Assembly: GCA_021613535.1 (NCBI GenBank)
Contig: CP075492.1
Coordinates: 4,960,001-5,024,000 of the forward strand
Direction: 5' to 3'
Length of the DNA: 64,000 nucleotides
Source: Adineta vaga
Lineage: Eukaryota; Animalia; Rotifera
Both the position numbers and the translations under genes were made by a program. Every line of letters begins with the position of its first letter. The first letter of the stretch is position 1. A model generated the notes under the pieces. It did no database searches, was not told the DNA's origin, and saw only the letters and a program-made list of their open reading frames with translations. Shown here in pieces: positions 2,865 to 56,029 of this stretch.

Positions 2865-5800
2865 ATGACGACAGCTGTTGATGTTCACCCTTCTCCTACT
2901 CATATCGAATCATCAATTGATTCGATTGATATTTTAACAAATGAAGATTTGCAGGTAATTGAATCGATTTATTCCTATTGGTTTGGTGAAAATATCAGTA
3001 CATGGTCAAAAACATATCCATTAAATAGTAAATTATGGTTTCGAGTCGATGAAAAGATTGATCAAGACATAAAAGAGAAATTTGAACGATATTTAATCGA
3101 TGCTACAACATCAAATAATAGTCTATATCAACGTTGGCAAACAACTCCTCGTGGTAAATTAGCATTGATTATATTATTAGATCAATTTCCTCGAAATATC
3201 TATCGTAGTACAGGAAAAATGTTTGAATTTGATCGATTCGCTCTTCAATTAGCATCTGATATTATTCATGATCCAACTCATGTAACAATTTACAGTTTAC
3301 CTGAACGATTATTTATCTATTTACCATTTGTTCATTCCGAAGAACTTCTTCATACAACAAAAGGGGCTGATTTAATGAATGATCTTGCAGCAGAAGTTAC
3401 TCAACGTGATTTACGACGACGATATACAGCTAATGCTCGTGCAGCTAAAACTCATCAACAAGTTATTGAATCATTCGGTCGTTATCCACATCGAAATCAA
3501 CTTCTCGGACGAGAATCAACAATTGATGAAGAAAAATATTTAAAAACTGCACGAAATGGATTCATTCAATCCGTCAATAAAACAACAACTAAACCAAATT
3601 CAGAAAACTGTACGATTACACATGAATTACCATCAACAGGTCCTCTTCTAAAAATTCTCGTTCTTCATGGTTTTCATCAAAATGCAAATAGTTTGAAACG
3701 AAGTGCAAAAAAAATATTTAAAAGTTTGAAAGATGTAGCAACATTTCATTTTGCGAATGCTCCACTACCATACGATCCAACAGGTGAAGTGAAAGAACAA
3801 TTATTAGCCGCTTTTGGTGACGGAAATATGCCCGATGTCGGTTATCAACGACAATGGTGGAATGCATCGAAAGATAGTAAAACCTATCATCATTTAGATG
3901 TTTCATTACATTATATCGATCAATTGTTTAAAACCGAAGGACCTTTCGATGGTATATTTGGCTTTGCTGTATGTATACATTTAAATATATATTGATTCTA
4001 TAATGTATTCTATATTTTATTTAGCAAGGTGCGTCGTTTGGTGGAATTCTTTGTGGTTTACAGCCATTTGGAAATATTTCATTTGAATTTGCAATCTTAA
4101 TATCAGGATTTGCATCACGAGCAGAATGTCATGAACAACTGATGCAACCAAACGCAATAAAAAATGTGACATCATTACATATCTATGGGGTCAATGATGT
4201 TTTGATTACTAATGATCGAACACTGAAATTAGCAGCTGCTTTCGAAAATCCATTGATTGTTCCACATCAAGGTGGTCATTTTACACCAAATACATGGCCA
4301 AATAAGGATATCAGACAATTTTTACTTGAACAACAAGAACATCTATCAAATAGAATCGATCGAACCAACAATTCTGACATGTTACAAACTCAAGTATTAA
4401 GAACATTTGAAGAAAAGATAGAAGCAACGATTTCACATCATCAAAAACAAATATCTACCTTACCTGTAAACGAACGAAAACAAAACAAGATTCCGATTGT
4501 TCCTATTGGTGTATCAACATTAATTAATTCAGAAAATATTCAACATATCATTGATAATGTCGACAATTATCTCCTGGATGATGTCATGCTGCTTATCTGG
4601 TGTCAAAGAACAACATTTCATAATATTGAACCTAAAGAAGATGAAACTACCGTCTTACCATTCTTTCGATATTGGATTCTATTATATTTGAAAAAACCAA
4701 TGGAGCTTCTCGCATCATATTTCGATCTCATTCCAAAGTATGGTAGTTGGGGAGATTTAAAAATGTTATATTTATCTATTGGTAAAATGGAAAATGAATT
4801 ATCGGCATCAGAGAAAATCTTACTTGATGATTTGAAACATGCGTGTGTAAAAGCATTTGGTGAACAATTAAAACGTGATGCTCACGCTGTATTGAATCAA
4901 CCTGATGAATCTGCTAATGAACAAGAAGAACAAATGACAATTAAAAAACAAGAATGGATTAGTAATTGTGCTAAAGAAGCACCACGCATTAATAATAATC
5001 GTAAAACTCCTAGTACACGTAAGTGCTTTCATTCTCTGCTCTCATATCTCTTGTTTCTAATCGTATCATTTAGTTATGGGCAAAGCAATAGCCAAATACA
5101 TGCATCCCATTCGTGATTCAATAAATACAGATGAAAAACAATACAATGCTGACAAAGGTTATTGTTATCAAATTTATAAACGATTGATTTCATCACTTTG
5201 CCATGTATTGGAAAAAGCATCACCTAATTTTGTTGATGAACAAGTTCGATCACGAAGTCGAAAAGATCGAGCTTTTCGATATACGAAAGAACAACGAGAA
5301 CAATTATTAAATGCTCCACCATCATCATACATCACGAATCCCGAACCCGAACCTGGTTAGTCAGTTTGTTATTCAATACATATCACTGTATGTTTTGTAT
5401 TTTCTAGTTGTTCCATGTTCTTTGGAAGAATTACAACCATTATTAGAACATTTGGTTTTGAATAAACCAGGACCTGGAGATGATAATCAATCGATTGTAT
5501 TTTCACGTGGTACTATCATGACTGGTGGACGATTAGATTTATGTAAACAAGTAGTAGGTCCAAAAGGTATTGAACCATTACTGAATGCTATGAAAAATAG
5601 TGCCGTCGTCAATCGATTATTATTGGGTATGTACTTTCTAGGTTATGAATAAGAAACATTTTAGAACTGTATTTATCTTCTTTAGGAAATAATATTGTTG
5701 GTCGTCCCGGTGCTGAAGCCATTTCTGCATATATTCGTTTGAATTCGGATTCCAATATTGATACATGGTATATAGCTGGAAATAATTTCGATGCTGATTG

Positions 5801-6707
5801 TATTTCATTAATATGTGAATCATTAGCTACAGATACAAAAGTGAAAGCACTTTGGTTAAAACGAAATCCAATTCTATCATCTGGTGTTATTCATATAGCT
5901 CAAATGTTAACAACAAATCATTATTTACAAACATTAGATTTACTTAATACAGGTTTATTAGATGATGGTTGTGAAATATTATTTAATGCTTTGAAATCGA
6001 ATCAATCATTAAAACATTTATATATCGATACGAATGGTTTAACCGTCAAAAGTGGACGAATCATACGTTTACATTTTGAACAACATGATAATCATTTAGA
6101 ATCTTTATATATGTCATGTAATGCATTGGGTGATGCAGGCACTTGTGAAATAGCTATGGGTTTGAAACATGATCAACGTCTTACACGACTTGGTCTCGCA
6201 TCGAATTGTATTGGTGTTGAAGGAGCACGTGCATTAGTTGATGCTTTAATTAATCATCCGTCACTTCAACAATTAAATCTTGGATATATGAAAGCAACAA
6301 TATTACTCGGTGGATTAGATAATGTTCTTGGTGATGAAGGTGCAACAGAAATTAGTCGATTGATTCGATTGAATCAACATATTCGTTCCATTGATCTGAC
6401 ATTTAATGGTATTTCACAACGAGGTTTAATGCAATTACGTGATGCATTAAAAGAAAATCGAATTTTAACAACATTGAAAGTATTACAATTCGGACAAGTA
6501 CATAATGAAATTACAAAAGAAGAAATCAGTACAATAATTGAACAAAATAAAATCGAATGGGGTAAACAACTGCTCAGTACTGATCCAAAATATAATGCAA
6601 CAACATTAACAAGAGTCGACTATTTACAAAAAGGACAACAACTGAACGATGATATCAATTTTCCGCCCCATGTCATGGAAATTATTAGTTACTATAGAAC
6701 ACATTAA
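2865..6707 (+). CDS. Five-exon chimeric protein (~1206 aa): DUF924 + FSH1-type serine hydrolase fold + DUF2828-like segment + RNI-like LRR
   Basis: Exons 2865-3968, 4025-5018, 5074-5355, 5408-5626, 5686-6707 join in frame via GT-AG introns. Motifs: LALIILLDQFPRNIYR and FGRYPHRNQLLGREST (DUF924); LVLHGFHQN, DGIFGFAQGA, HIYGVND, HQGGH (FSH1); IPKYGSWGDL..EQLKRD..SNCAKEAPR (DUF2828-like); RGT..GRLDLCKQ, LWLKRNPI and repeated LxxLxLxxNxI (LRR). Confidence 0.8.
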
Positions 6708-6904: not shown

Positions 6905-9303
6905 ATGGTAAAAATGTATCTGTTTATCTCATTCTTTCTTATTGTTGGCTGTTGGTGTGAGGTACAAGTATTAGTTGATAGAAACGGATCATATCAGATT
7001 AGTATTGGTGATCATTTATGGCTTCGTTCATCTCGTACTGCTCTCTATGTTGATAATAAATGGTATTCATCCGATGATAATTCTCTTCCATTAACGAGTA
7101 TATCATTTGCTCAAGGTTCGGATTCAAATTTAGGCAGTTGGAATGAAACACAACTCAATTATGATCTTATTCGTAGTGGAATGCACACGAAAATTGTAGG
7201 TCATATACGACAATGGCAGATGTATCCTGCAATTACATTTCATTTGGATGCGGGTGATCAAATCTTAAGTAATTCGATACCTTTAAGTATGGATAAGGTT
7301 CGTACTATCTTTCCATCATTTCATATTGAACAAATTGATGAACATGATCAACGAGGTTATTTTACATTTGCTGGTAAGTATGAGATGATTGATACGTACT
7401 TGATATTTATATACTTTTTTTTAGGAGAAATGTCGGGTGATGATGAAAAACATGCTGGATGGTGGAAATCATCCAGTAACGTTATAAACGCCGGTATGAA
7501 CGGAGGACCAACTGTTCTTTTTAATTTGACGCAACAAGGCGAAGATGATATCGTTGTTCTTTCACCATTTTCTCGATTTATGGCTACTTCATTTAGTCAA
7601 ACAAATGATGTTCTTGAATATGGTGTTATGGGTTCAATGTTAACTATACCAGCTAATTATAATCATTCCATGATTGTCTTCTATTCTTCGAAAGGTATCA
7701 ACGAAGGTTTTCGAGAATGGGGTCAAATGATGCAAAAAGCACATAATCGAACAAATGAACATCGTCTCAATGATTTAACAATTAATTATCTTGGTTATTA
7801 TACTGATAATGGTGGTTACTATTATTATAATACCGAACAAGGAATAAATTATGAACAAACAATGATTGATATTCATCAACAAATTCCTCTACCATTTCAT
7901 TATTTACAATTAGATTCTTGGTGGTATTATAAAGGTATTGGCGGTGGTGTAACTCAATATACACCGATGCCAAATATATTTCCTGATGGTTTACAAGTAC
8001 TTCATCGTCGACTAGAAAATATTCCTTTTGCAGCACATAATCGATATTGGGCATTTGATACTGTTTATAAACAAAATTATTCTTTTGCTCTCGATGAACA
8101 GAATGGAAAAGCATTACCGATTGGAAATGATTCGTTTTGGATCGATCTATTTACTCAAACACGTGATTGGGGTTTGATTCTTTATGAACAAGATTGGCTT
8201 GATCGTCAAACATATAATTTTACGCCGACATTTACAGATATTCATCTTGGACATCAATGGTTAATGTCTATGGGTGAAGCAGCAGAAAAAATTCAAATGA
8301 ATATTCAATATTGTATGAGTTTACCTCGACATATTCTTACTGCTTTACAAGTTTCACGTGTGACACATGCACGAGTATCAACTGATTATGCATTTCATCT
8401 TGAACAAAGTCGAAATGCATCACAATGGGCAATTGGAATATCAAGTATGTTTGCTGATGCAGTTGGTTTAGCACCATTTAAAGATGTTCTTTGGTCAACA
8501 GAAGATCAACCTGCTGCACCTTATAAAGATTCACCACGAGAAATACTTCCCGAACGTGAAATACTTATTGCAACACTTTCAACTGGACCTGTTGGACCTG
8601 GTGATGCTATTAATTATACAAATGTTCAACGAATTATGAAATGTTGTCGACAAGATGGTTTAATCTTAAAACCCGATCGACCATTGACAACAATTAATAC
8701 TTTAATATCTGATTGGGCTTATTATAATGGAATTTCACAAGGTGAACTGTATTCAACAAGAATAACTATGTAAGTATATAGATTTTGTTTTCTTTTCATC
8801 TACAGACTTTGAATACTAATTTAATCTCTAGAAATAATCAAACTTTTCATACAATCTTTGCATCAGCAATGAAAAAAGATTATACTATTTATCCATCAAT
8901 GATTGGTGCACAATCGGGTGTTATATGGTCGTATAATGATTCAAGTATTGTCCTATCATTTTCAGATACTAATCCTCTTGATGTATTCGCTGCTCAATGT
9001 CATAATTTATCCATATGTCTTTGGTATGTTTCACCATTGATGCAATTAGGTGATTCATCTCGAACACACTATGCTCTTCTTGGTGAATCGAATAAATGGA
9101 CAGCAGTTAGTCGACAACGTATTGTTGATATTACAGCCACAAATACTGCTGCTATAGTAACACTTCAAGGTGCACCAGGTGAATTCGTACTAATGAATGT
9201 TTTTCATGGTGTTTTATTATCAGTAACTGTAAACTGTCAAATGTCTGCAGATGTTGGCAAAGCTCGACTGATGATTACAGCAATGGATGTTAATTGCACT
9301 TAA
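6905..9303 (+). CDS. Secreted glycoside-hydrolase-like protein (clan GH-D / GH36-like TIM barrel), ~761 aa, 3 exons
   Basis: Signal peptide; exons 6905-7373, 7425-8769, 8832-9303 in frame; motifs YYTDNGGYYYY, LQLDSWWY, AAHNRYW, LYEQDWL, QYCM, LSTGPVGPGD, LILKPDRP. Substrate unknown. Confidence 0.7.
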
Positions 9304-11711: not shown

Positions 11712-12747
11712 TCATAACATTCCTTTTATTTTCATTTGAATCAATGTACTTCTTAATTTCTCTTGATCAGCTCCATGAACCGAAGAAGCAAATCCATCGA
11801 CACCACGTATTGCATAAGTTCCATTCAACGAATTTTCTTCTTCACCTCGAGTAACACCTTCAACTGCACCAGCATCTAAAGCAGCTTCAATCAATTGAAT
11901 TACTTGATTACCCGTTGGAATTAAATCAAATCTATTTGCTTTTGCAGCAACAATTGAAGCAATAGCTTGTAAAGCAAGATTGGAATTCCAAGATGTTACA
12001 GGAATATCAGAATACACACCACTTGCTACAATTGTTTTACCATCCGGTGCTAATGGTATTATATCTTTAAGATTAGCCATGCCAGCTTCATTTCCACCAT
12101 CACCAACACCAATAATAATACCTTTACCTTTAAATTGAACGAGCATTTCATCAACTGGATGATTCCAATCATTTATATTTTTACCAATCATATTTCGACG
12201 AACACCATCATACCAATTTCGACTGGAAAGTTCACCAGCAAGCATAACTTTTGGTTGTAGTTTATTAATAAGTCTCTGTGCTTCAATAATTTGTTCCTTC
12301 TCATTATGATGTGAACTGAATTCGTAAACTGAACTATCATCACCTTGAATTGATTTTAAACATGCACGAAGAACTTGACTAGTTATTGGATCAGCAACAT
12401 AAGATACACGATAAGATAATTGACGAAAGATTTCACCGGCAAGTATTGCACCTGGTGGACCATCGGTTTCTGCAACGGATATCTTTTGATTGTTGACAAG
12501 TTTTTCTGTGACACAGAAACCAGTGAGAATAGTAATGGATGAACCTTTGTCAAGTTTTAATAATGTTTCGGCAGCTTTTTCAGCACTACCTGGTGGTGCA
12601 TAGAATTTCGATAGATTTCGCATATCATAACTGCTTAGAATAAAATCTACAGGAGTAAACATTTTTAATTGTGACGCACCTTGAATAGAGAAAATGTTAT
12701 CTCCTTCAACAATCGAAATATTACTCACCACTAACAGCCACTCCCAT
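11712..12747 (-). CDS. D-glutamate cyclase-like (DUF4392) protein, single-domain bacterial/archaeal type
   Basis: ILTGF, ETDGPPGA, IGVGDGGNEAGM, SWNSN motifs. True start is probably ATG 12747 (MGVAVSG) spliced across a 49-nt intron at 12680-12728. Confidence 0.8.
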
Positions 12748-13213: not shown

Positions 13214-14839
13214 CTAACAAGGAGGATATTTCATTTGTAAATAATTCATCAAAGCAGCTGTTTGTGCGATATTAATAGTTTGTATCAATGTAATATTCGG
13301 ATTATTGAACCCAGTATATAACCTTGTATATTCTATAGTTACAACTGTATAATTAAGACCACTAGTTCCGACATTTATACCATTGACTAACCATGTCACT
13401 CCTTGATCTGGTGTTTGTATTCCAGTATATGAAAGAAACATTCCATTTCCTTTCGATGATCTACCAACAGCTAAAATTCGAGCAAGTATTTGTCCAGGAA
13501 CAGAAAGAACTTGAATATAATTGACATATGGTAATATACGTATAACATCGTAACCGGTAATTGTATCACGAAGAATATCGTCAATACGTATTGCTCCACT
13601 ATTAAAAATGGCAATAGTTGATTGATTTATTGATGCTGCAGTTATCATACTTTCACAGATTGCATCAGATATTGATGTTTGAGAAGTTCGTACAGCTTCT
13701 GATCTTCCATCCAATTCAACACCTGCTGGTAGACATGAAATTGTTTTTTCGATTGGATATCCTAATGCAGCAAATGCTTGAATACCTAAATTGTACCAAT
13801 ATTTCGCTACAATTGCAGTTTCTTTTTCTTCAGGAATATCTGATGTTATTCTTGTTAACGTACTATAAATACGAAGTTTCTTCGTATCGATATTATAAGC
13901 ACATCGATGAATAAAAACAGTAAATGCATTGGCATCGGCTTTCGAAAGTGGAATATATTTTGGTCCACGTAAATAGTATTGATCTTCATGTTCATGTCCA
14001 CCTAAAATCAAATCAATTTGTGGAATTTTTGCAGCAAGTTCAATATCTTGTGCAATATCTAAATGAGTAAGAGCAACAAGAACATCATATGTTCCATTAG
14101 GAAATTGAGTTAAAAATTGTCGAATATAATTAATTAAAGATGCTTGATCAATGAAACGAGCATAAGTCAAATTTGAAGGAACTGTTAAACCAATGATAAG
14201 AATACGAACACCATCAATAGTCAGAATTTTATGTGTTAAACTCGTTCCAATTGATTTGCTACTATTCATTTGAAATACATTTGTACTAATCCATGTAAAT
14301 TTCGATTCATTCATTCGTAACAACAATTCGTTATGATTATAATCAAATTCATGATTACCAAATGTCATATAATCTAATCCAAGTGTATTCATTGTTGCAA
14401 TCATTTGTTTGCCATTCAAAGCCGTTCCATTTACTATTGCTGTACTCAATGCTGATGGTGATATTAGATCACCAGCAAGTAATGTAAATGTATTTGAATT
14501 TTCCTCTTTTAATAATTGCCGTAAATATGCTACACGAGCTAAACCACCTTTACGACCTTTATCAAGTGGTAATAGTTCATAAACATCATTCATTTGTAAG
14601 AAAGTCCATTGAACATAATGACCATCATTAGGTAATCGTTGAGGAAAACCAATAGCTCCATTTTCAACTGCATAAGTATGGGATAATATCAGTCGTGTTA
14701 GATTTCGTTCATATCGCCATAATGAGCCATAGATTATCGTCAAAATAACAAGAAAAAGTATCACAATTGATAGGATGAAATACGTAAGTCCATGTGTAGT
14801 TAACATAAATCTCCATCGACTGTCATTATTGAAAACCAT
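13214..14839 (-). CDS. Bifunctional metallophosphoesterase / 5'-nucleotidase with N-terminal membrane anchor, intronless
   Basis: LQMNDVYE, GGLAR, AGDLISPS, FGNHEFD, ALTH, ILGGHEH and C-terminal NSGAIR domain; N-terminal hydrophobic helix. Confidence 0.9.
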   Translation of the reverse strand: MVFNNDSRWRFMLTTHGLTYFILSIVILFLVILTIIYGSLWRYERNLTRLILSHTYAVENGAIGFPQRLPNDGHYVQWTFLQMNDVYELLPLDKGRKGGLARVAYLRQLLKEENSNTFTLLAGDLISPSALSTAIVNGTALNGKQMIATMNTLGLDYMTFGNHEFDYNHNELLLRMNESKFTWISTNVFQMNSSKSIGTSLTHKILTIDGVRILIIGLTVPSNLTYARFIDQASLINYIRQFLTQFPNGTYDVLVALTHLDIAQDIELAAKIPQIDLILGGHEHEDQYYLRGPKYIPLSKADANAFTVFIHRCAYNIDTKKLRIYSTLTRITSDIPEEKETAIVAKYWYNLGIQAFAALGYPIEKTISCLPAGVELDGRSEAVRTSQTSISDAICESMITAASINQSTIAIFNSGAIRIDDILRDTITGYDVIRILPYVNYIQVLSVPGQILARILAVGRSSKGNGMFLSYTGIQTPDQGVTWLVNGINVGTSGLNYTVVTIEYTRLYTGFNNPNITLIQTINIAQTAALMNYLQMKYPPC

Positions 14840-16549
14840 TGATTAGATCAAATCTACAAAGATATAATTTGTGCATTTTCAAGACTATACTTTGAATGTA
14901 TATCGATCGATTATACGTGAAAAGAAAAATACCCTGGATGTCTTCGTAAAGATACTACCTCCACTTACAGAAAGAAAGAAGAAATAGAATAATATACATA
15001 TATACAACAAATCCATCTATAGGAAATTTGAAGTATCTTCGCTAAATTTTTCGCTAAAAATTATTAATTGTCTTTCATATTCATTAACTGTTTTAGAAGA
15101 ATATCACTCTCTCTCTCTCTACTTATTACTAACATATCAAACGAAATGAATTCAGTTATGTCTCGTACTATTTCAGTGCAATGCATGTGATTTTTCTTTC
15201 TTTCTTTTCATTTCTTTTTTTAACCCCATGTGTAAAGAGAATTAGTTGTTGATTTTTTACATAGATTATTGAATGCGATGGTATTTCAACGATAATCCTT
15301 ATTAAAAAAACATGTGTATATGTCCGTTACTTAAGCTTTCGAAACACTTCTTTTATACTTAATACTCTATTCAAACTGTTAAAACTGACAAGACTATCTT
15401 GACCACTTTGATTCTTTATTTTAAATTGAATGTTATATTCAGGCACACAAGTATTATCGTGACATGGCTTCGATAAGAGCTAGATTATACTTCTTGGAAT
15501 GGTTACAATAACCACACTTTCGATGTCGCCGCCGCACATGCTCTAAAGTCGAAAGAAAAGAAGAACATTAAAAGTGTAAAGACAATGTAGATGTCGCGTT
15601 CCATAGATGCTAAAGAGGCGTAGCTTCCTGCAACTGTAACAAGAGGTAAATTTTCCTACAAGTCAATTTCTTGTTGCGATGACGAAAATAAGTGGATTGG
15701 TAGCAAAACTAGTCCATCAGAGCAACATTTGTGAATCAAATTTATTCTACGCTCTCAAGGAATATATTTCGATCTGGTGACAATAATGTGCACAGTAATG
15801 GTCTGTCTGAAAGTTTTTGAACTGAGTATATTATAATACATTAGCGAACTGTAATGTTATCGCATATCTTGGGTGTTCTATAAACTTTTATGAGAGCATG
15901 TAAATTGATAAGTTAATTAATACATGCATTTTCCCTGTCTTTATTCGACAACAAGAAGCATACATATGAAAATATATGTTGTATTTTACATGCTTTGATT
16001 TTATTTATGGTACTTCGAACATTTATTCGTTACTTTACTGCATGAAATCGAATTTACAATCATTTCATTTTAACTCTAAAGTGCACATCAGTCGAAAAGT
16101 TCTGATAAAGTATACCTTTCTAGATCATTCTACGTCTGAAGAATATTGATGATACTCATACTAGCAGTAGGATTCAAATCAAGAACTATCATTGGCTGGA
16201 AGAATCATGACGTTTGTTCTCGACAATACAAGAGATAGACACAAATCTTGTGAATAAACACGAATATTTTACTTACACGTTTTGTTTTTAAGATAATAAC
16301 TATGAGTAAATATCTTATGAATATGTTCCTGATTTGAATTTAATTAAGCTAACACACTTGTTCCCAAGCTTGGATAGATTCAATTTCCTAACCTCATTCA
16401 AGTAGTTGAGCACTTCGTTTAAATATTATTTATTAAAGTTAGTGAAAGCTGATTAACAATGTATGGATAAGAATATTTCTCTCTCTCTCTCTTTTGATTA
16501 TATAAAAAGGGAAAAAATAATGTTCAAATATAAATCATGCCAATGATTC

Positions 16550-16763
16550 TCATTCTGCAGCTGTATCGACCGAACGTTTAGCCGGTTGTGCATCTTGAAT
16601 TCGCATCAATAATGGACGTACTCGACTACCTCCTCCCCAACGTGCTTCACTTGCAAGAATAAAAGCCAAAAAAGTCAATACAGTTAAGATTTGTGCAAAG
16701 AACCTAGAGAAAATAATATAAAATAGGTCAGAATCATTTCATTCAGTAATATATTTACTTCAT
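16550..16763 (-). CDS. 52-aa secreted peptide precursor (not in ORF track)
   Basis: Exon 16763-16759 (ATGAA), intron 16758-16704 (GTAAAT..CTAG), exon 16703-16550 give MKFFAQILTVLTFLAFILASEA-RWGGGSRVRPLLMRIQDAQPA-KR-SVDTAAE*. Probable 5'UTR intron at ~16799-16859 and TATA-like run at ~16902-16914. Confidence 0.75.
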
Positions 16764-17312
16764 ATTGAATCGATTGATAATGATGGATGTTGAGTACCTT
16801 AATCAGAATCAAACGCAATAGAAAACTCGTTTTTGTTTTTCCAAAGAAAGCATTCTTACTTGTTTCGTTAAAGGATGAAAATGTCGATCACCGATCCATC
16901 AATATATATATATACCTGTATATGGTTACTAGAAAAACTATTTAGTATGCATCACTTGATGGTATTGTTTCAAATTATTATACACATTATTTCTATAGAA
17001 TTTATGATACGTATAGATAAAGGTCTCGAGTTTTAAGATGAAAATACTTGATCCAAAACCGGTTATGTAGAGCAAAAAAGTACGTGTTTTCAAATTTATT
17101 GAGTCAAAAATGATTGGAGAAAATATATTCATTCATTTTTAATTCAAGAGAACACTTATTGCGCATTTAAAATGAATAATTAAGAGAATACATAGAATAA
17201 ATATGGATAAGATTGCAAATGTATTCATATGTGACTTTTGAGAGGAAATCAAATCTAGAAAGAAAACTATTCTATCAAAATTGGCCCTCCAGTACTTTTT
17301 GATTTTGCAGCA

Positions 17313-19390
17313 ATGGCAAGTTTTCGGATGATACATATTTCTATATATTTATTCATCATTGGTCGATGTCAATCAGAAAATCTATTCGAACTACCGATTA
17401 ATATTGAACGATATCGAAACTTTCATTTTGCAGGAAATGAAGAACCAGTTAAGAATGATTTTTATGCAAGTATTCAATCAATCAACAATCGATTGGGATC
17501 TTCTACATCAGACATGTATCTTTTGGCAAATGAAGTAGTACTAATTCGAAATGCTCTCTCCGAAAATGAACAGAAATCATTATTCAATTCATTGGTGTCA
17601 TCAATTCCCAAAGCATTATCATCTGTTCAAGTGGATGAGGGTCTCTGTCCCGATGGTAAATGTACTCTGCATACCTGGAAATTAAATGAAACACTAAATG
17701 AGTTAAATTCAAAGAGAATTCAAACAGTAGGAGAAGGAATGTATTCAAAAGCTGCATCATTTCTTCAAATACAACAAACAATACGTACCAAAAATACTAT
17801 TGATAAATCTCTTCATTGTCCACCAATTCATCAGAGACCATCATTCAAATATGTTCATGGGGTAATGTACGATATCAATGATTCACTTGGTTTTCATCAT
17901 GATAAAACCTGGTCAGCACATCAGAACTCCTCATACGAATGGGTAATCTCCATTTCTCTTGGACATTCAGCTGTTTTCAGATATCGAAAGGACGAAAAAG
18001 AAGCAACGACTGAAATCGTTCTCAATTCAGGAGACGTACTTTTCTTTAATGGTGCCGCTTTAGAACATGCAATGCCTTATATTCTGAAAGATAAGTATCC
18101 AATATGGTGGACTAGTGTTGATACATCTCAAAAGGCACGTTTAAATATACAATACCGAGTATTAGGTGAAGAAGATTTTCAACAACAAAATACAGATGTA
18201 ATTCGTAGTTCTACTCGATCTTTAAATTCGGAGATGGATAGAAATCGAATCGTACACTGTGCTGCATCTGTAACAACACTCGGAGACAACAAATTTCTCA
18301 CCGGTAAGATAAAATTAACAGCAAACAGGTAAAGAAAAATCCCGCCTTTATAGAATCTCATGGAAACACCGTCTCTTTTGGCGCAGCGTGGATGAAGCGA
18401 ATTTTTGATCTCGCACAGCCAACTGAAGCTGAAGTAAGTCGAATGAAGATCATATTACAGTAGAGTAAAGGTAAATATATTTGATCTTCTAGAAATCAAC
18501 TAGTATGTCTTCTCACATAAATGTTACTGGATTTGGAACAATTTTACGTAACTACTGGCCATTTACGTTGCATGAACATTTAAATAATCAACGCTTAGCG
18601 ATCCTAGGGATGCGTGGATTGAATACTCAATTGCCTAACGATAATGGGTTGTTAAAAAAACTCTTTTACGAATGTCTATTGGAAATTCAAAAATTACCAA
18701 TATCTGTTGAAGCCAATGGCATTGTAATGAGTTTTTTAGATCCTAATTTGATTATTTCACTTCATATAGCTGGTGTTTTACAAAATCCAGCTGATTTTGA
18801 CAGTACTTTTTCATCCAAAGAAATCATTGATATAAAACAATTAGTATCTCAAGCAATGACATTGATTAATGAGACGGATGCAGAACTCTATCTTTGTATT
18901 ATGCAATCCGTGACAACATTAGCTTTTTATAAATATGTTGATCCTGGTTATATTGGTGGAACAATTTCGTCGATTATTGGAGTGATTTGGCTTGATCCAA
19001 GTAATAAGGAAATGGACAGTAGAAATGATGGCCGAACAAATCGTTCATGAATTTATTCATACTTCATTGTTTATTAATGAACTCGTTCATACATCGTACT
19101 CTGATTATAATCTTCTTGAAGTAGCTCTCGTAAAATCAGCCATTCGTCAACAGATGCGAAATTATGATAAATCATTTCATGCTGCACATGTAGCAACTGG
19201 ATTAGTCGCTTTTCTAAGCAAAGCTGGTTACATCCAACGTGCAACAGATCTGGTGGCGAATTTACGATCATCGATCGCTGATTTAGAAACTGTTTCTATC
19301 CATACAGGTGTTCTTTCTACCAGTGGTCGAACAGTGTTACAAGCTCTTCAAAATTTTTTCTACGAGGGTGTAAGACGAAGCAATGCTTGA
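17313..19390 (+). CDS. Three-exon fusion (~655 aa after correcting one indel): signal peptide + AlkB-like 2OG-Fe(II) oxygenase + linker peptide + aKG-HExxH-type peptide hydroxylase domain
   Basis: Exons 17313-18303, 18354-18433, 18493-19390; introns of 50 and 59 nt (GTAAGA..TAG, GTAAGT..TAG) keep frame. 2OG domain: GFHHD, VISISLG, LNSGDVLFFNG, EH, RLNIQYR. HExxH domain: GGTISSIIGVIWL, AEQIVHEFIH, VKSAIR..RNYDKSFHA. One extra base near 19008 splits the last exon. Confidence 0.75.
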
Positions 19391-20637
19391 CATTTGTTTT
19401 CATTAAAAACGCGATTATATTCGACAGCTTTTATCTTTATTCAATAAATATATGGAGTCCTTTCTGTAGTTGAGAAATGTCTATAGTGGATGGCGAAAGG
19501 GGTACGGATCAAAATTTCTCGACTTAAAACTTACACTCACTTGCTCGCAACTATAGTAAAGTATGAATAGGGCTGGGCGAGGATGAAAGTATCAACGAAT
19601 GGACATGATGTGGGATCGTTGTTTTTGCATATTATCATTAATATATAGAATATTATTCAGAGTTCTAGAATATTCGTGTTTATTTATATTTTTTCGTGAG
19701 TATTTGAGCTTGATTTAAATCTGTTCAAAAAAATGATTCCGTTTATATCATTTGATGAGTTTATAAAAACATTCAATAGATCGAATCGTATACTATCGTA
19801 ATTGCATAGCGAGAACTATTGTTATTTATTTAATTCTATGAAAGCTAATACGAAAGTAATATTTCGAGTATAGCAATTGTATTTGTATTATTTTCTATTA
19901 ACTTTGAGTCATCAGCAGATAAATTATTTGAATCAATTGTGTTCTCATAAGAAATCACCAGAACAACTTGTTTCCTATCTTCACTATTCTGTACAATATA
20001 ATCAAAACATCGATTTGTATCACGAAATGTCACTATGTACGGATCAACCTTGCACAGAGACAGATGCATTGTCCTAGTAATATCAGTAGTAAGAACGTTG
20101 GCTGTTTGATCTAACTAGATTGTAATCTTTGACATGTTTATCGATAATTAAAATAACTCATCATTCCTTTTCTACTAACTCATTCTGCTTTGATCGCTCG
20201 AAGTAGTAACAATAATAGAAACTGCAAAAGTATGATTTGTGATTTTTGTATAAACAACACGCACTTTTATAGGAATTTATCGAGTGGAATATGACTCACG
20301 TTCTTTTACAGACGAGTCATTAAAAGATTTCACAGGAAAAACACCATTGTTTCTTGACACAAAGTGCAACAAGCAAAAAGGGTTTTTTCTCTGATGTATG
20401 CAACTATACATGTATACATAAGAAGAAAGTTTTGTTAGTTGTCTATAAAAATCGACTAGTGTATTTTTGGGTGAACTTTTTCTACAAGAACTCAATGTCA
20501 ATGGTAAATACCTTAGATCTTTTGAGATATTTTTTTTAAATATTTGTTAACTGAATTCAATTGTATAATATTACATTAAGTATCTTGAAAAGATTGATTC
20601 TTAAGCCAAACATACTATTTTATCGGAATTCATTTAG

Positions 20638-22353
20638 GATGAAGATACGGACGAAATCAATGATATTTTACCTGACGCAGATGACGATAATTTTCAGGAA
20701 GATGTCTTATATAGTTCATGTATGTCCATCAGTCTTTTCTCATTACATTTAACAATTAAATTTGTTATTTCAAAGTTCCCGACAATTGTGAAGATGAAAC
20801 AACCGGTATTGAAGCTATGAGTAAATGTTTTTTCCAACGATATGACGCATGCCCAGCTTTCTTTACGGGATCTCTCGGAGAAGCACTTGATGCTGCATTT
20901 AGTCCTTCAACGGTTCAAGAAGTATGTACTTCTCTTTTCATAAAACAAATCATCATCTTATTCTATTTCAGCGTCGTCCATTGTTGATCTACATTCATGA
21001 TAATAAAAACTGTTTCAGTAATATCTTCTGTTCAACAACATTCTGTACTTCGATCATCATAGACTATTTACTCGACAACTATATCGTGTGGCCATGGGAT
21101 ATTACACATCAATCAAATAAAACTAGGTTAGTCACAAACATATCTTCAATTCTAATTGCTTTTCTTCCGGTCTCTAGTTTCATCGAATTTTGGCAACAGA
21201 TATTTCCTTACGATTCGATTGAAAACGCTTTTGAAAATCAATATCCTACGCTCATTGGTATCCAGCGATTGTTTGAGAATAAAGATAAATTGTCGACGAT
21301 TGAATACGGCTATGACCTATTCAAAGAAAGTATATGGACACGCAATAAAAATGCAGCCACTTCTAAACTATTGCTGGAAGGATTGATGCGTTTTCGAGAA
21401 GAAACGAATGAAAATGAACAGAGTCTAGTAAGTTTGTTGCACTCCATTAGTGGTAAAAATAAGGAAATCTCGATTTTTATTTTTAGTCAATGAATTTGAT
21501 GTCTAAAGTTGGTGGTCGTGAAGAAATCATCTTCGAAATAATGAAATATCTTTCATTCAACGATGCGATCAATGCATTCTCACCAAATATCATTCCTTTA
21601 TTTCGAAGATCGAAGAAGAAGAAACTACCAATGGTTGAACATTCTACAATGTTTATTGAGATGTTACTTCGAAAAATCGATCCAACGCAAATTGTTTCAT
21701 TACAACTTAGATCAGAAGATTTAATATTAAATCAGACTAAACCGCAGTTATCAATATACAACAGTGTTAGATCAATCTCATTTGTGAATTTTCATAATGT
21801 GAATGAAATCATTAGGAATGTAATGTCGTTGAAATATTTGACTTGTGTTTCACTTTGGTACGACAGCGAAATAGCCTTTCATGTAATAAGTACGATCAGC
21901 GGGGTATTTCAACAAACAATCAAACAACTTAAAATACATTGCGCAGGCGCATTGTGTGCTCATGGTATTGGAAATGATATATTAGACAACTTCAACCAGA
22001 ATTATTCTATTGAGTATTTAACCGTCGATATGAGTAAATTTGCAGCAGTTGGCATAGACAGTTGTTCGCGCAACTATCCATCATGTTTATTAATGATGAT
22101 TGTTGATTTGATCAAGCGTATGAACAAAATTCGTTGTGTTGATGTGATTACAAATAGATACAATATGAAGAATTTGTTGGATGTTAACGAATGGAAGAGA
22201 ATAATCGAGTATCAGCGTACTCTAGCAAAGGTGACATTACGAGTTGTGGATATGAAGCGAGATGATGAAGAAATCTTAACAAAGATTGACGAGATTCAAA
22301 CAATGTTTCGACACTCCATTGATTTCCGCGTTGTTTTCTCATCATTTCCCTAG
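20638..22353 (+). CDS. FAF1-like UAS (thioredoxin-fold) domain fused to F-box-like/LRR region; 5' end unresolved
   Basis: Approximate exons 20638-20719, 20776-20921, 20971-21126, 21178-21427, 21487-22353. UAS motifs FFQRY..CPAFFTGSL.EAL..AF, RRPLLIYIH, YIVWPWDIT, YP; F-box-like EIIFEIMKYLSFNDAINAF followed by degenerate LRRs. Confidence 0.6.
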
Positions 22354-22819
22354 TCTTTATACACACGAACGGAAAAAGCTCACGAATAATGACACATTCA
22401 AGTTGACAGAGTGATAGTTTTCGATAAAAATCGTTTTTATTGAAGAATTCTTTTTGAATAAATCTAATCTATTTTGCACTAAAAAGAAATTATATACACG
22501 AATCAGATATTCTAGTATTGGTTTTCTTGCAAGTAAGATAACTTGACCATTTTTTATAAAAGAATTTAACGCCTCGATCTGTTCAACAAGTGGGAAGAAA
22601 GTATAATCAAACTCGATTTCGATTCTGTAATACAGCGAAGAGACTTGAAATTACAATTATGTTTTTCTATGATAAATAATCGAAATACTGATCAAGATAG
22701 ATATACTTTATCGTTTCAGTTGAATGAGTTATGAAATAATCGAAAGTCGAAAAAAACGCACGTTAATTACTGAGTGTAATTTCGTCAGTCACTGCGACTC
22801 GTGTGATGTTTATTTATTG

Positions 22820-23379
22820 GTAAAAACATCAACTTGTCTTGTTGATATAGCCTATTTATTCTATGAACAAAAAGAATTCAATAACGCTCTTATATACTAT
22901 AAGAATGCATTAACTATTCGAAAGGAACATTTTCCAGACGGCTATAAATTAATTCTTGATACTCATATCGACATGGCTATTATTTATTTTGATCAAAATG
23001 AAAACGAGAAATCTATTGAAAGAATTGATTATTTACAAAAGATAGCAGAATGTTGGTTTAAAAACGAATCTTACAATCATTCAATTGAATATCGTGAACA
23101 ATGTTTAACAATTAGAGAATCAAATTTTCTTCAAGAACATATATCTGTAACTAATACTCTTTTGTATTTAGGTATAGCTCATAGCAATCTACATCAATAT
23201 GATTTAGCTCTCAATTATGAAATGCAGTTGTATTTATAATACGTGAACAAATGTTGCTACCAAATCATTTTGATATTGGCGAAAGTTTATCAAATATTGC
23301 CTATTGTTATGCCGGATTAAATCAATTGGAAATATTTTTAGAATGCTTTAAACGAGCATTAGATATTTATGAACAATGA
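22820..23379 (+). pseudogene. Truncated tetratricopeptide-repeat (TPR) gene fragment
   Basis: Repeats such as ALIYYKNALTIRKEHFP, LGIAHSNLHQYDLALNY, SLSNIAYCY..FKRALDIYEQ*; frameshift near 23235; no credible 5' exon. Confidence 0.6.
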
Positions 23380-24076: not shown

Positions 24077-24545
24077 ATTTCCTAGCTTAATTAGATAAAA
24101 CTATTTTCATTATATAAAGAACTCATTAAAGTCTTTCGGGATTTAGGTTGAAGTACTATTACTGATATACCTCCACACGAACGATTATCCATTCAACAAA
24201 AACCAGTCTTTTTCTATTATCTAACCTTTGAAAATACTCACAGTAAAATCATTCTATTTGTAAGTTTTTGTATAATTACAAACTAGTAAATGCTTCAGAT
24301 AATTTTTCTTTTTTTTCTTAATTCATTTTACTGCACGTGTTTATTATAACTCACTAACGTATACTTTCTTATCATTCATTAGAGCATACAAGAAGAATCT
24401 CTAACTATTTTCTCTTTTCTTAGATATACAGTCCAAAAACGTTGTTAACAGCGAAAAGAAAAGATTGCCGTTAGCTCACTTTAATAAAGAGAAACGTTCA
24501 TATATTAATAAGATCTTGTATCATTTCAAATATCCATATAATAGA

Positions 24546-25650
24546 ATGACAACAATAACACTTGCAAATCAATTGACAGATTTAACTACCAAACTTATGA
24601 TGTATTACATGACACCCATTTATATTATTGGTATACTAGGAAATCTAATTAATATTATTATCTTTTCTCGTCGAACATTACGTTCAAATACATGTTCACT
24701 TTATTTTATTGGTATGTCAATAAGTCAAATTCTTCTTTTTAATACATTTGGATTAACACGAGTTATTACATCTCGAACTGGTATTGATTTAGGTGGAGTC
24801 TATGTTGGCCTATGTAAATTACGAATCTTTGGTTACACATTTAGTCTTGGTCTTACACGTCAATTTTTATGTTTAATATCAATTGATCGTTGGATAATAT
24901 CAGCAAAACATGCACATATACGGAAAATTAGTTCACCGAAAGTCGTCCGTTGGTTAATTATTGGCAGTGTTTGTTTTTGGGCTTTGTTTAGTATGCATGG
25001 ATTGATTGGTTATCAAACAACACCAACATATTTCTGTGGAGCTCCACTAGGTTCTTTCTATGCGTCATTTTATGCTATTCAAATAACAATAGCATCGATT
25101 ATACCATTCATTGTTATATCTATATTCTCGATGTTAACTTTACGTAATATTCGTCATCATCGACGTATTCGAACGATTAATCCAAATCTTCTTCTATCTG
25201 CAACAGCAAATGTTTCTCTACCTCAAACACTCAATTATCGTCGACGTGAATTTCAATTGATTAAAATCTCATTCTTACAAGTCATCTTCTATGTTACTTT
25301 GGCAATGACATCAACAATTTTTCCTCTCTATTCATATTTAACAAGTACATTACCGAAAAGTACAGATCAATTAGCTATTGATGCATTTATTATTTCATCA
25401 GCTTTAATTCTTCTCTATACATATACAGCAGTATGTATCATGATTTTTTTTTCTTTCGATTAAAATTAAGTTTTCTTCTTTTATTTACTAGTCAACATTC
25501 TTCATCTATACATTAGCATCGAAAGCATTTCAAAAAGAATTTCTAATTACATGCGCTATAATTTTCAAACATATCAAACGTGTTATTTTTTTAAATTACC
25601 CATTTATTTCAGAAAAATTCATGAAAAATATTATCAACCAATATAGTTAA
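24546..25650 (+). CDS. Rhodopsin-like GPCR, 2 exons
   Basis: GILGNLINIIIF, CSLYF, LCKLR, ISIDRW, seven hydrophobic segments; intron 25431-25491 followed by STFFIYTLASKAFQKEF. Confidence 0.85.
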
Positions 25651-41110: not shown

Positions 41111-42049
41111 ATGTCATTAGCAGAAACAATTAGATCTATTACAAATAAACTTAATTCATATTGTGGTTGTATTCTTTTAATTATTGGATCAATTGGTGCA
41201 TTATTGAACATGTATACCTATCGGCAACGAACACTTCGTACAAGTCCTTGTTCCATTTATCTTTTTAGTCAATCATTTTTTGATTTATGTCATTTAATTA
41301 ATACATTATTTACACGTATTCTTTTTACTTTATCAATTGAAACTTATTCAAAAAATGATTTTTATTGTCGAATTCGTTCATTTATTGCTGAAGTAACATC
41401 ACTTTGTGCTGTCAGTTGTTTGTGTTTAGGCACTTTTGATCGTTGTATGTTTACTTCAAGACAAGAATCTTTACGTCGATGGAGTTCTCATATATTTGCC
41501 TATCGTTCCTTGACCATTATCATTATAGTATGGTCTTTGATCAATATTCCACAAATAATTTTTCGTGGTATGACAAATAATACTTGTACGTCTTTATCCA
41601 TTAATTTCACTCTTTATTTAAACTATTGTCATACACCATTGTTCTATGGTGTCATACCTATTATAACCTTATTTTATTTACGAAAACATACTATGCAAAA
41701 TCTTCAAAATCTTCAACATACCGTTATTCTTCGTTCTCGAATGGAACGATATATTAATCGAATGCTATTGTTTCAAATTAGTTTAGCTTTATTTACTTTT
41801 CTACTTTTAATGATACAATATATTTATACAGCAGTAACGATCTATACACAAAAAGATGCGTTACATACAGCTATTCAAAATTTATCTCTACAAATTGTTC
41901 GATTAATTTTCTATTTGAATTATACAAGTGCATTCTATATTAACTACTTTGTGTCGCCAGAAATACGTCTCATTATACGACGATTATTTACTTGTAAGTA
42001 CCAACGAATTCGACCAGTGAATGCGATAGGTCGCGGTGAACAACATTGA
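41111..42049 (+). CDS. Rhodopsin-like GPCR, intronless
   Basis: GSIGALLN, SPCSIYL, YCRIR, TFDRC, seven TM segments, FYINYFVSPEIR. Confidence 0.88.
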   Translation: MSLAETIRSITNKLNSYCGCILLIIGSIGALLNMYTYRQRTLRTSPCSIYLFSQSFFDLCHLINTLFTRILFTLSIETYSKNDFYCRIRSFIAEVTSLCAVSCLCLGTFDRCMFTSRQESLRRWSSHIFAYRSLTIIIIVWSLINIPQIIFRGMTNNTCTSLSINFTLYLNYCHTPLFYGVIPIITLFYLRKHTMQNLQNLQHTVILRSRMERYINRMLLFQISLALFTFLLLMIQYIYTAVTIYTQKDALHTAIQNLSLQIVRLIFYLNYTSAFYINYFVSPEIRLIIRRLFTCKYQRIRPVNAIGRGEQH

Positions 42050-51286: not shown

Positions 51287-54200
51287 TCATGCTGAGTACT
51301 TGTTGGAATAATGTCGACGTAATCGATTAACGTTAGTATTTAATATTTCATATAAGTTGTTTGGGTTTTGGATTCGATATGTGGATTCATTGAGTTGTTG
51401 AATTATTTGATATGGACCATCATATTTTGGCATCAGTTTTGACTTCAATCCAAGTCGCTTGACGTAAATGAAATCACCAACAACATAGTGTTCATTCGTT
51501 CGATTGGCATCATAACGTTGTTTTGATTTTATCTGGATGTTTCTAATGTTCGCGTGAACGAGTTGCTTAGCTGCTTCTAAATATTCTTGCAATTGTTTAA
51601 CATATTGATGAGGTTCAATAATTGTTGTGGTGGCTTTTGGTAAATCATATGGTAATTTACATAATCGTCCAAACATCATTTCATAAGGAGTTAGTTTTGT
51701 ACTTGCATGGCGACTTGTGTTGTATGAGAATGTTAATTTAGATAATTGTTGATCCCAATCAGTTCGTTTACTGTTACACATTGACGCTAAACTGTCGCAC
51801 ATGGAGGAGTTAAATCGTTCACACACACCATTTGATTTTGGATTATATGGTGTTGTATATAAATGACAGATACCATATAATGATGTAATTTTGTTAAATA
51901 ATTCAGCAGTAAAATGTGTTCCATTATCCGTTAAAATTTGATTTGGTGTACCATATTTAAGTATCACTTCTTCTACTAGAACTTTTGCTGCACTTAATGC
52001 TGAATTGTCATGTGTGGCTTTTGCTACTACAAATTTGGATAATAAATCAGTTATAACTAATATATATTTGTTTCCATTTGATGAAGATGGTGTTATTGGA
52101 CCCATAAAATCCATTGCTATATTTTCCCAAACACCTTGTGGTGGAGTAACAGGATTTAAATGACCATTTGGCTTCCGTCGTGAACATTTGTTGATGGAAC
52201 AATTTGGACAAGATGCTATATGTTGTGCAATATCAAGATACATACCTTTCCAATAATATCGATCACGAATTTTGTAATAAGTGCGGTCTTTGCCAAAATG
52301 TGCACCATTCATTGATGAATTATGATATGCTAATAATATATCTTTAATTCTTGATTTAGGTACTACTGGTACTTGAATAATTCCATGAAATCTCCTAATA
52401 TTTCGACATAATAATCCATCATTTAAATAATATTCGAATTTAATTGGACTCTTGTCAATATTTTCTATGATTTTCATAATAGATAAATCTTGCTGTTGAA
52501 ATGTTTTCAATTGTTCAGTTGTAAATACAGTGATTTTATCGTTTGTACTTAACGAACTTGATTGTTGAATAGGATGATTAGTTGAAGTATCAGTTTCTTT
52601 TAATACATTTTGTGGAGTAATTTCACTATTTGTTAATGCACATATTGTTGATTGATGTTGTTGTGGTTCAGTTTGAGTTGATGTTGAACGTTGTTCGATT
52701 TCATCATCATTTTCTGCATCAACAGGATAACGAGACAGACAATCAGCAACACAATTTCTTTTTCCTTTAACATGTTCAATTGTAAATGTATAATCCTGTA
52801 AAGCCATTCTCCATCGATTTAATTTTGGATTGCTGTTGTATTTACGATTTAACCAACATAAAGCATGATGATCCGTTCGTACGATAAAGTTATGACCAGC
52901 AACATAATGATTCCATTTTCGTATTGATGTAACAACAGCAAAGCATTCTTTTTCAGTGGCATTCCAGTTGCGTTGTTGTTTGTTTAATTTTTGAGACATA
53001 TATGCTACTGGTTGTTCACCTTGACCATGATCTTGCATTAATACTCCACCTATACCATAATTCGATGCATCCACCTGTATAATAAATGGTAAATCTGAAT
53101 CAGGAAATTTTAATAATGGTTTCGTTGCAAGAAACTGTTTGATTTTCATAAATGAATGTTGTTGTTCATCACCCCATGTAAATCTTGCATTTTTTCTTGT
53201 TAAATCAAATAATGGTTGAGCTAATGTTGAAAAATTAGGTATGTGATTTCGATAATATTCGGCCATTTTAATGAATGATGTTGCTGCTTTAATATTAGTT
53301 GGAATTGGTATTTCATTCATAGCATTCACCTTGTCATAGCATGGTTCAACACCGGCTTCACTAATCATGTGTCCTAGAAATTGGATTCTTTTTTGTACAA
53401 ATTCACATTTTGTTGCATTTAATCGAAAATTTGCTTGGTGTAATAAAGATAATACTTGTTCCAGATGATGTAAATGTTCAGACATTGATTTGGAATAAAT
53501 GATAATATCATCAATGTATGCTAATGCACAGTGCCATTGTAAATTTCCTAATAATTTGTTGACTATTCTTTGGAATGTTGGAGGTCCATTTTTTATTCCT
53601 TGAGGCATCACATTGTATTCCCAAAGCATATCTCTTGTTACAAATGCAGTTTTTGGTTTGTCCGATTCGTCAATGGGAACCTGATGATAACCTCCTTGGA
53701 AGTCTAATTTTGAAAAATATTGTGATCCATTGAGTGCGTCCAACATTTCTTGAATTCGAGGTAATGGATAGTTATCTTTTTCTGTAACTTCATTCAATTT
53801 TCTGTAATCGATACAAAATCTCCAAGATCCATCCTTTTTCTTTTGCAGCACCACTGGTGACGACCATGGTGATTGTGATGGACGAATAATGTTATCATGA
53901 TAAAATTGTTCACACATTTCAGAAATAATTTTCTCTTGAGCTGTTGTTTTGCGATAAGGACGTTGAACAATTGGTCGAGTATTCTTTACTTCAATTGTAT
54001 GTTTAACAGTTGTTCTAATCGTTGTTGCTTTGGATGTATCAAATATTTGAGCATATTTAATTAAAATTAATTCCACTTCTTTTCTTTCACGTGCATTTGT
54101 AATATGTTTAACCGAATCTTTAATCTTGTTTAATACATCTGATGAAAGCTGTTCGGTGATTCCATTTTTGTCATCACCTGAATAATGACCATTATTATAT

Positions 54201-55860: not shown

Positions 55861-56012
55861 TAGAATTGGATTTGGTTGAGGAATGTTTTGTTGGATAACT
55901 TGTTGAATATTTTGTTGACGTGGACGGAGATTATAAGGATTGGCCAGGTTAAATAATGTAATAACTGGACTGATATTTCTTGATTTCTTCTTTATGATGT
56001 TAAATTGATTTA

Positions 56013-56029
56013 ATCGGGTCACGGCACCA
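56013..56029 (-). promoter_or_regulatory. Primer binding site, probably tRNA-His
   Basis: Minus strand TGGTGCCGTGACCCGAT one base after the 5' LTR; complementary to the eukaryotic tRNA-His 3' end (..GTCACGGCACCA). Confidence 0.85.

Follow-up and report, generated by a model that had tools for sequence, protein, structure and literature searches.

A predicted double oxygenase gene of the rotifer Adineta vaga and its candidate peptide substrate

The aKG-HExxH oxygenases are a recently recognised family of enzymes that, in the papers found, occur only in bacterial gene clusters for RiPPs (peptides that are ribosomally synthesised and then modified after translation). Two of them, PflC and PosC, hydroxylate Gln and oxidatively remove a C-terminal ARMD motif to leave an amide, and PflC can also hydrolyse (PMC12636437). 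The gene described here lies at 17313–19390 on the forward strand of a 64,000-nucleotide stretch of the Adineta vaga genome (contig CP075492.1, positions 4,960,001 to 5,024,000; referred to as the window), taken from a 100.8-Mb assembly of 6 contigs with a GC content of 31%. It is predicted to encode a protein of ~655 amino acids with two separate Fe(II)/2-oxoglutarate (2OG) oxygenase domains, an AlkB-like domain followed by an aKG-HExxH domain. On balance the evidence inclines, by a modest amount, towards a secretory-pathway double oxygenase that acts on a peptide with the core LMR[VI][EQ]D, the likely substrate being a 52-residue prepropeptide predicted immediately upstream. No paper describing an animal member of the aKG-HExxH family was found, and the family goes unmentioned in the paper that treats the horizontally acquired biosynthetic genes of bdelloid rotifers.

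With the bacterial aKG-HExxH peptide oxygenases (the HExxH domain of ChlBH, BpmH, PflC/PosC and SjiH) the window enzyme shares the hidden Markov model family, the HExxH motif with its downstream Arg and His, the fold seen in PDB entries 8s5f and 22ob, and an association with short, sometimes repeated, core peptides. It differs from them in lying in an animal genome, in containing introns, in standing behind a predicted signal peptide and in being fused to an AlkB-like domain; the identity of animal HExxH modules to bacterial members is ~25–34%. It also has no radical S-adenosylmethionine (SAM), MNIO or transporter partner nearby, and an earlier note on this DNA, made from the sequence alone, was right that the window holds no visible radical SAM gene, as there is none among its large open reading frames (ORFs). 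Unlike bacterial leader–core peptides, the substrate-like units found in relatives of the window enzyme are fused to the enzyme itself.

Enzyme-fused or multi-core RiPP systems are also known from eukaryotes, namely the BURP-domain burpitide cyclases of plants and the borosins (OphMA) and dikaritins (ustiloxin, with Kex2-processed repeats) of fungi. The clade to which the window enzyme belongs follows the same logic of tandem cores, signal peptide, dibasic sites and covalent linkage between enzyme and cores, but the enzymes are unrelated, being Fe/2OG HExxH and AlkB-like here and copper BURP, SAM methyltransferase and DUF3328 proteins there. The host here is an animal, and in the window genome the enzyme and a putative single-core peptide are separate, divergent genes. 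Animals possess multi-copy neuropeptide and prohormone precursors, which are processed by convertases and amidated by peptidylglycine amidating monooxygenase (PAM). Signal peptide, short repeated units and KR sites are common to these and to the system described here; the present units, however, lack the Gly needed for PAM and are fused to bacterial-type oxidative enzymes.

Gene structure and the two oxygenase domains

The gene is a single expressed unit of three exons. In the ORF track it appears as pieces at 17313–18332, 18505–19050 and 18992–19390 (+) with a short open stretch between the first two, all of which join into one gene. Contigs from the Logan collection for four RNA-type runs were aligned to window positions 16400–20400. 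One contig of 1592 nt (from run X8) and one of 473 nt (X20) skip both introns exactly and join all three exons. As the 100.8-Mb assembly has only one copy of the gene, this joined form is mRNA and not a retrocopy; a search of the same assembly gave no paralogue of either domain, of the upstream mini-gene or of a repeat array. The junctions are precisely those that the earlier note had predicted from the letters, and the spliced RNA that it had asked for as a check therefore exists.

The 5′ untranslated region (17248–17312) is taken from the point at which the X8 contig begins, and no upstream ATG is present in it. Exon 1 (17313–18303) ends in phase 1 and encodes the signal-like hydrophobic N-terminus, the AlkB-fold 2OG-Fe(II) oxygenase and a poorly conserved linker tail. 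Intron 1 (18304–18353; 50 nt, GT..AG) is spliced out in the X8 and X20 contigs and its position is kept in ortholog contigs. The 80-nt exon 2 (18354–18433) carries a conserved Trp segment, ..TVSFGxxWMxRIFDLxQ.., ahead of the HExxH module and is followed by intron 2 (18434–18492; 59 nt, GT..AG), likewise spliced out in both contigs. Exon 3 (18493–19390) starts in frame, encodes the aKG-HExxH oxygenase module and ends with a stop codon at 19388–19390. The 3′ untranslated region (19391–19477) contains AATAAA at 19443–19448, and the transcript contigs stop at 19468–19477, ~20 nt past this signal. All of these features are on the forward strand.

The reference sequence breaks frame within exon 3, in an A/G-rich run at 19008–19012 (+) that is two nucleotides short in the reference alone. 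Contigs from X8, X17 and X19 carry two additional A's at 19008/19009, in two different intact versions, which restore the frame as ..DPS[N/D]KKKWTVEMMAEQIVHEFIH.. (beginning ..DPS[N/D]KKKW..), and none of the transcript contigs examined has the frameshift. The exon 3 ORF is also intact across this site in three environmental contigs of an 82%-identical ortholog (291 residues, P0076). At 17589–17799 X8 has two contigs that differ from the reference at 3 and 7 disjoint positions, so that the reference here is a mosaic of two haplotypes; a consensus error in the A/G-rich run at 19008 is therefore plausible, and a null allele may be the alternative. The fear that the frameshift might be fixed in alleles and relatives is thus not borne out. 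A decaying pseudogene, which would require the break at 19008–19012 to be real and fixed, has the out-of-frame reference in its favour and is very improbable against these intact transcripts and orthologs, in which every catalytic residue is conserved. As a separate observation, contigs from X8, X19 and X20 share an identical set of nine substitutions relative to the reference at 18543–18654 although labelled as organisms A, B and C; the labels may stand for one species complex or for shared cultures.

For domain assignment the exons were searched singly, rather than as the joined spliced protein, with the intact ortholog ORF P0076 substituted for exon 3. Exon 1 scores 56.4 bits on Pfam PF13532 (gathering threshold 31.2). 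On the AlkB equivalog TIGR00568 it scores 27 bits against a cut-off of 231, and the domain is classed as something other than an AlkB orthologue. Alignment with relatives places the AlkB-type metal and 2OG residues at H195 (17895–17897), D197 (17901–17903), H252 (18066–18068) and R276..R282 (18138–18158), all on the forward strand. H195, D197, H252 and R276-x-N278-x-Q-x-R282 are invariant across 7 relatives, as is a Cys pair, and the complete HxD..H..RxNxxxR site recognised in the earlier note is upheld. The best PDB fold matches of a model of exon 1 (pLDDT, the predicted local distance difference test score, only 61) are OsALKBH1 and E. coli AlkB (E 2e-9), and the nearest Atlas clusters for the domain are eukaryotic AlkB-like proteins.

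The AlkB and ALKBH demethylases of nucleic acids and proteins have the same double-stranded β-helix fold, HxD..H iron triad and RxNxxxR 2OG motif. Unlike them, the exon 1 domain has a signal-like N-terminus, a conserved Cys pair, a fusion to a peptide oxygenase and, in relatives, peptide arrays alongside; on account of these features and of the sub-cut-off AlkB score, a nucleic-acid substrate is unlikely. The hydrophobic N-terminal segment is present in the window protein and in P0004, P0005 and P0006, making four fused lineages, and three of the longer proteins of the family also begin with such a segment (P0086 of Haliotis rubra, P0093 of Mya and the ENA protein P0082). The segment had been noticed before as signal-peptide-like; its occurrence in relatives suggests that the window protein enters the secretory pathway.

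The C-terminal piece scores 45 bits on TIGR04267 (48.9 bits in a six-frame search) with a curated cut-off of 40. Among the relatives, the score is 54.7 bits for P0076 and 56–62 bits for P0004, for P0073 and for the HExxH ORF on contig L010. An alignment of 27 animal and bacterial sequences locates the HExxH site at HEFIH (19046–19060, +), with the distal His at 19178–19180 (+). The alignment shows no variation at H178, E179, H182 or R215 and ≥90% conservation of S208 and of the distal His (H222). The window has every one of these residues, between 19046 and 19180, which agrees with the complete metal site proposed previously. Since the reference frame is broken, the fold test was run on the 82%-identical ortholog P0076. 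Its model (pLDDT 92.9) matches ChlBHExxH (8s5f, E 1e-7) and SjiH (22ob, E 3e-6), with E 0.1 for the best peptidase; a PDB sequence search with the HExxH profile gave nothing meaningful, where the fold search did match. By profile and modelled fold the exon 3 domain is a member of the aKG-HExxH family (TIGR04267/IPR026337), as the earlier note had proposed, and not a zincin protease, a grouping that it had named as a possible refutation. The spliced gene encodes, after a signal-like N-terminus, two oxygenase domains of the Fe/2OG type, both of them complete.

The same note had taken exon 2 for a precursor-like peptide, a reading that is not upheld. Against the ortholog, the exon 2 core aligns without gaps at 79% identity, compared with 42%, with indels, for the linker that precedes it, and both flanking intron positions are conserved in the ortholog. 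The exon 2 Trp lies 35 residues ahead of a YWPF motif; in P0087, P0004 and the L010 protein the corresponding SWLPL, EWLPL and SWIPL segments lie 38 residues ahead of the matching [FY]W[PC]F. Shuffle tests gave no significant similarity of exon 2 to the repeat units of relatives (p 0.03–0.39) or to the mini-gene peptide (p 0.09). Because of this positional match to the pre-domain Trp segment of close relatives and the non-significant shuffle tests, exon 2 is regarded as part of the enzyme module and is ruled out as a precursor peptide. Exon 1 ends in a stretch, ‘DNKFLT’, that MAFFT aligns to the first P0004 unit; it was considered as a relic core and discarded, as it is not conserved in a 74%-identical ortholog.

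Relatives, peptide arrays and origin

An exhaustive search with exon 1 gave just five matches below E 1e-10. Two relatives, P0004 (1300 residues) and P0073 (1315 residues), are single ORFs in which the oxygenase is followed by 38–39 tandem units and then by the TIGR04267 domain. The units are 16 residues long, DNRWLMRVEDKPSTDP, with a 48-nt period, 92% matches and no indels. Both ORFs lie on metagenome contigs of 0.4–0.9 Mb with sparse ORFs and eukaryote-type neighbours (7tm_1, p450), and their oxygenase is 33% identical to that of the window in alignment. Over contigs L008–L010 as a whole the neighbours are of eukaryote type (7tm_1, p450 and a long interspersed nuclear element (LINE) reverse transcriptase). 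On L010, P0006 consists of the oxygenase and at least 11 MEQPYLMRVQDKPRK units, and the next ORF on the contig has the HExxH domain; P0087 has NPLLMRVEDKLNSEHA units. Taken over the fused relatives, the units between both domains are 15–16 residues long with the core LMRV[E/Q]D and number 11–39 tandem copies. It was also observed that at 10946–12014 of L010 the array of 45-nt units runs on past the P0006 stop codon, with frame breaks, before the HExxH ORF; these breaks could reflect errors in long reads (24x depth) or an array that is decaying.

Identity of the N-terminal domain between the window protein and its fused eukaryotic relatives is 27–33% in alignment. The fused double oxygenase suggested by the earlier note is therefore real as an architecture, but the idea that the fusion arose in this animal has to be given up: to judge from the same architecture in eukaryotic metagenome contigs, the joining of AlkB-like and HExxH domains did not take place in Adineta vaga but is found in distant eukaryotes. 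The repeat array itself is absent from the genome of the window.

A search with a profile of the HExxH modules recovered 34 proteins, among them uncharacterised members from three Haliotis species and from Mercenaria, Mya and Pinctada. In Mercenaria at least 10 units of 28 residues ending in KR lie upstream of the HExxH module. This 28-residue array (contig L041, 9500–10400) spans two annotated gene models and two frames, and the annotation of the Mercenaria HExxH protein probably lacks its 5′ part. The gene of Haliotis rufescens is a single exon. No AlkB-like domain was found within 10 kb of the Haliotis and Mercenaria genes checked, and a clear repeat array was not seen in the Haliotis members.

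The arrays show which part of the unit is retained. Differences within the P0004 array number 17 synonymous and 7 non-synonymous in the core NRWLMRVEDK, compared with 25 and 34 in the spacer, and lineages that have nothing in common in their spacers share a conserved core LMR[VI][EQ]D. Dibasic sites are absent from the P0004 units, and several other arrays have KR or RK. In relatives within the animal clade, arrays placed between the oxygenases or N-terminal to the HExxH module join the likely substrate physically to the HExxH enzyme.

The nearest bacterial-type relatives are ~25–34% identical and include a Bacillus safensis protein named aKG-HExxH-type peptide beta-hydroxylase. They sit in dense operons behind small ORFs with a repeated core. 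In L015 a small ORF at 7546–7872, adjoining the HExxH gene, has APQYVWGA twice and a third copy, GAQYVWGA; L011 has one core copy and a radical SAM gene nearby. The repeated-core ORF of L015 also stands beside a gene set of EboA/UbiA/TatD/DHQ-synthase type. The nearest Atlas clusters for the HExxH module are 97–100% bacterial. A tree of 27 HExxH modules groups the sequences from animals and other eukaryotes in a single clade (support 100/99, stem length 1.04), which in this unrooted tree with thin bacterial sampling stands beside, and not inside, the 11 bacterial-type rows. Named database matches of the clade come from molluscs only. No relative turned up when prokaryote genome contigs were scanned with the animal motifs, and the searches yielded nothing from bacteria at the identity level of the window gene.

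A bacterial origin of the HExxH module is plausible from these comparisons. As the clade also includes molluscs, any transfer would be ancient and shared with them, and its direction is unproven. The proposal of a horizontally acquired and intronised module consequently survives in part: a bacterial source is plausible and the introns are removed in transcripts, but an acquisition specific to this animal is not compatible with the mollusc members.

A candidate precursor gene and the proposed function

A mini-gene is predicted on the reverse strand at 16550–16763, head-to-head with the oxygenase gene and ~550 bp upstream of it. Its exon 1 (16759–16763, ATGAA) is separated by a 55-nt intron (16704–16758, GTAAAT..CTCTAG) from exon 2 (16550–16703). 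The predicted product has 52 residues, a signal peptide followed by a 30-residue propeptide, RWGGGSRVRPLLMRIQDAQPAKRSVDTAAE, and contains the core PLLMRIQDAQP (16583–16615, −) followed by a KR site at 16574–16579. The GC content of exon 2 is 0.43, against 0.22 for the intron and 0.28 for intergenic DNA. The back-translated LMR[VI][EQ]D pattern has 1 match in the window (0.05 expected) and 15 in the 100.8-Mb genome; 8 of the 14 other genome sites were read, none of which has a peptide-gene context. The core resembles the units of P0087 and P0006 with shuffle p of 2e-4 and 4e-4, and the chance that a pattern match falls less than 1 kb from the genome's single HExxH gene is ~3e-4, values that are optimistic because the core pattern was chosen after the sequence had been seen, which counts against the assignment.

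In L037, a contig from a related species, the mini-gene's start codon, donor, acceptor and signal peptide are preserved, after which the contig ends. A metagenome scan with the signal exon returned only one contig, which was already known. In the first ~300 nt (−) of contigs L005 and L006, from the 82%-identical environmental ortholog, the mini-gene intron is broken by unrelated GC-rich sequence, and three contigs end there; the interruption may be a mobile-element insertion or an assembly break. On sequence grounds the mini-gene at 16550–16763 (−) is a better precursor candidate than exon 2. The candidate RiPP maturase of the earlier note is in this way kept, with core arrays fused to the enzyme in relatives and multi-core neighbours in bacteria as new support, while its precursor is no longer placed in exon 2.

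In the proposed mechanism the window enzyme and the propeptide would both enter the endoplasmic reticulum (ER), where the HExxH domain would oxidise one core residue, most likely by β-hydroxylation of Asp or Gln. The AlkB-like domain would perform a second oxidation, after which a proprotein convertase would cleave at KR and the modified peptide would be secreted. Hydroxylation is assumed as the default, on the model of ChlBH and BpmH. The analysis shows how the gene is built, that it is expressed, to which families and folds its domains belong, what architecture its relatives have and that the core-bearing mini-gene is adjacent, and it is the localisation, the identity of the substrate and the chemistry of the window enzyme that we infer.

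Further points weigh against this proposal. The four runs that cover the oxygenase gene contain no RNA contig for the mini-gene. The conservation of its core can be read in no other species, as each ortholog contig stops or is broken there. A predicted complex of the HExxH ortholog with the 30-residue propeptide gave no verdict, neither for nor against. Signal peptides were judged from hydrophobicity alone, P0004 and P0006 come from contigs with no assigned species, and enzymology exists for no animal member of the family.

The alternative that survives best is that a real secreted or ER double oxygenase acts on other proteins (matrix, eggshell or mucus) or on small molecules, the arrays being linkers and the mini-gene coincidental or not a gene at all. 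Animal ER 2OG oxygenases that act on proteins, the prolyl, lysyl and aspartyl hydroxylases, are well known. The mini-gene without an RNA contig, the indecisive complex prediction and the Haliotis members without a clear array fit this view. Linkers, however, would not be expected to keep LMR[VI][EQ]D across lineages with wholly different spacers or to be depleted of non-synonymous change in that core, and neither the small chance value for the adjacency of the mini-gene nor the multi-core precursor ORFs that adjoin the bacterial relatives would be accounted for. Other substrates are consequently considered unlikely, though they deserve serious attention.

A second alternative keeps the partnership with the LMR[VI][EQ]D peptide but has the HExxH domain cut the backbone instead of, or besides, hydroxylating it, either oxidatively to a C-terminal amide or hydrolytically, so that the array units are freed. 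PflC and PosC provide the precedent (PMC12636437), and the P0004 units, being without dibasic sites, need some other mechanism of release. No tie to the PflC subgroup is visible at the sequence level, however, and ordinary convertases could act at the KR or RK sites of several arrays and of the mini-gene; backbone cutting is accordingly rated as improbable. Bacterial contamination or misassembly, for which it can be said that the HExxH family is otherwise bacterial, is scarcely credible for a gene whose two introns are removed in transcripts, whose GC content of 0.32–0.35 equals that of its flanks, which lies inside an 18-Mb-scale contig among eukaryote-type genes and for which the searches gave no bacterial match at its own level of identity.

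Surroundings of the gene and significance

Other features of the window are recorded here for completeness. At 2865–6707 (+) lies a series of consecutive ORFs with DUF924, which is a bacterial family, with an FSH1 serine hydrolase divided between two of the ORFs and with LRR_6 repeats. On the reverse strand, at 11715–12731 and 13217–14839, are a single long ORF whose C-terminal domain is D-glutamate cyclase-like (PF14336) and a Metallophos/5′-nucleotidase ORF. Just downstream of the double oxygenase gene lie a FAF1 UAS-type ORF (20924–21490) and a TPR ORF (22724–23236). Two single-ORF rhodopsin-family seven-transmembrane receptors are found at 24465–25460 and 41111–42046 (+), and a Ty3/gypsy-type long terminal repeat retrotransposon at 51290–56022 (−) has an open gag of 335 residues and a protease–reverse transcriptase–RNaseH–integrase ORF of 1250 residues.

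Three aspects of the system are new as far as the sequence comparisons go: the presence of the HExxH module in one animal clade that includes molluscs, the enzyme–array–enzyme layout, and a predicted core-bearing mini-gene beside a single-copy enzyme. It is tempting, if speculative and on present evidence doubtful, to suppose that invertebrates (rotifers, molluscs and others) make ribosomal natural products from self-contained precursors with tandem cores fused to or beside a bacterial-type aKG-HExxH oxygenase, and that this enzyme, besides hydroxylating the core, would by a PflC-like oxidative cleavage release C-terminally amidated LMR[V/I]-type peptides with no need for PAM.

The double oxygenase and the 30-residue propeptide constitute a directly testable system of one enzyme, one peptide and three cofactors, and the 39-copy arrays of the relatives name the peptide to be sought by mass spectrometry. 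If the proposed function is correct, an expressed animal member, a clade that contains commercially important molluscs and the array layout would together extend RiPP-type chemistry to animals, and would point to an undescribed animal route for modified peptides.

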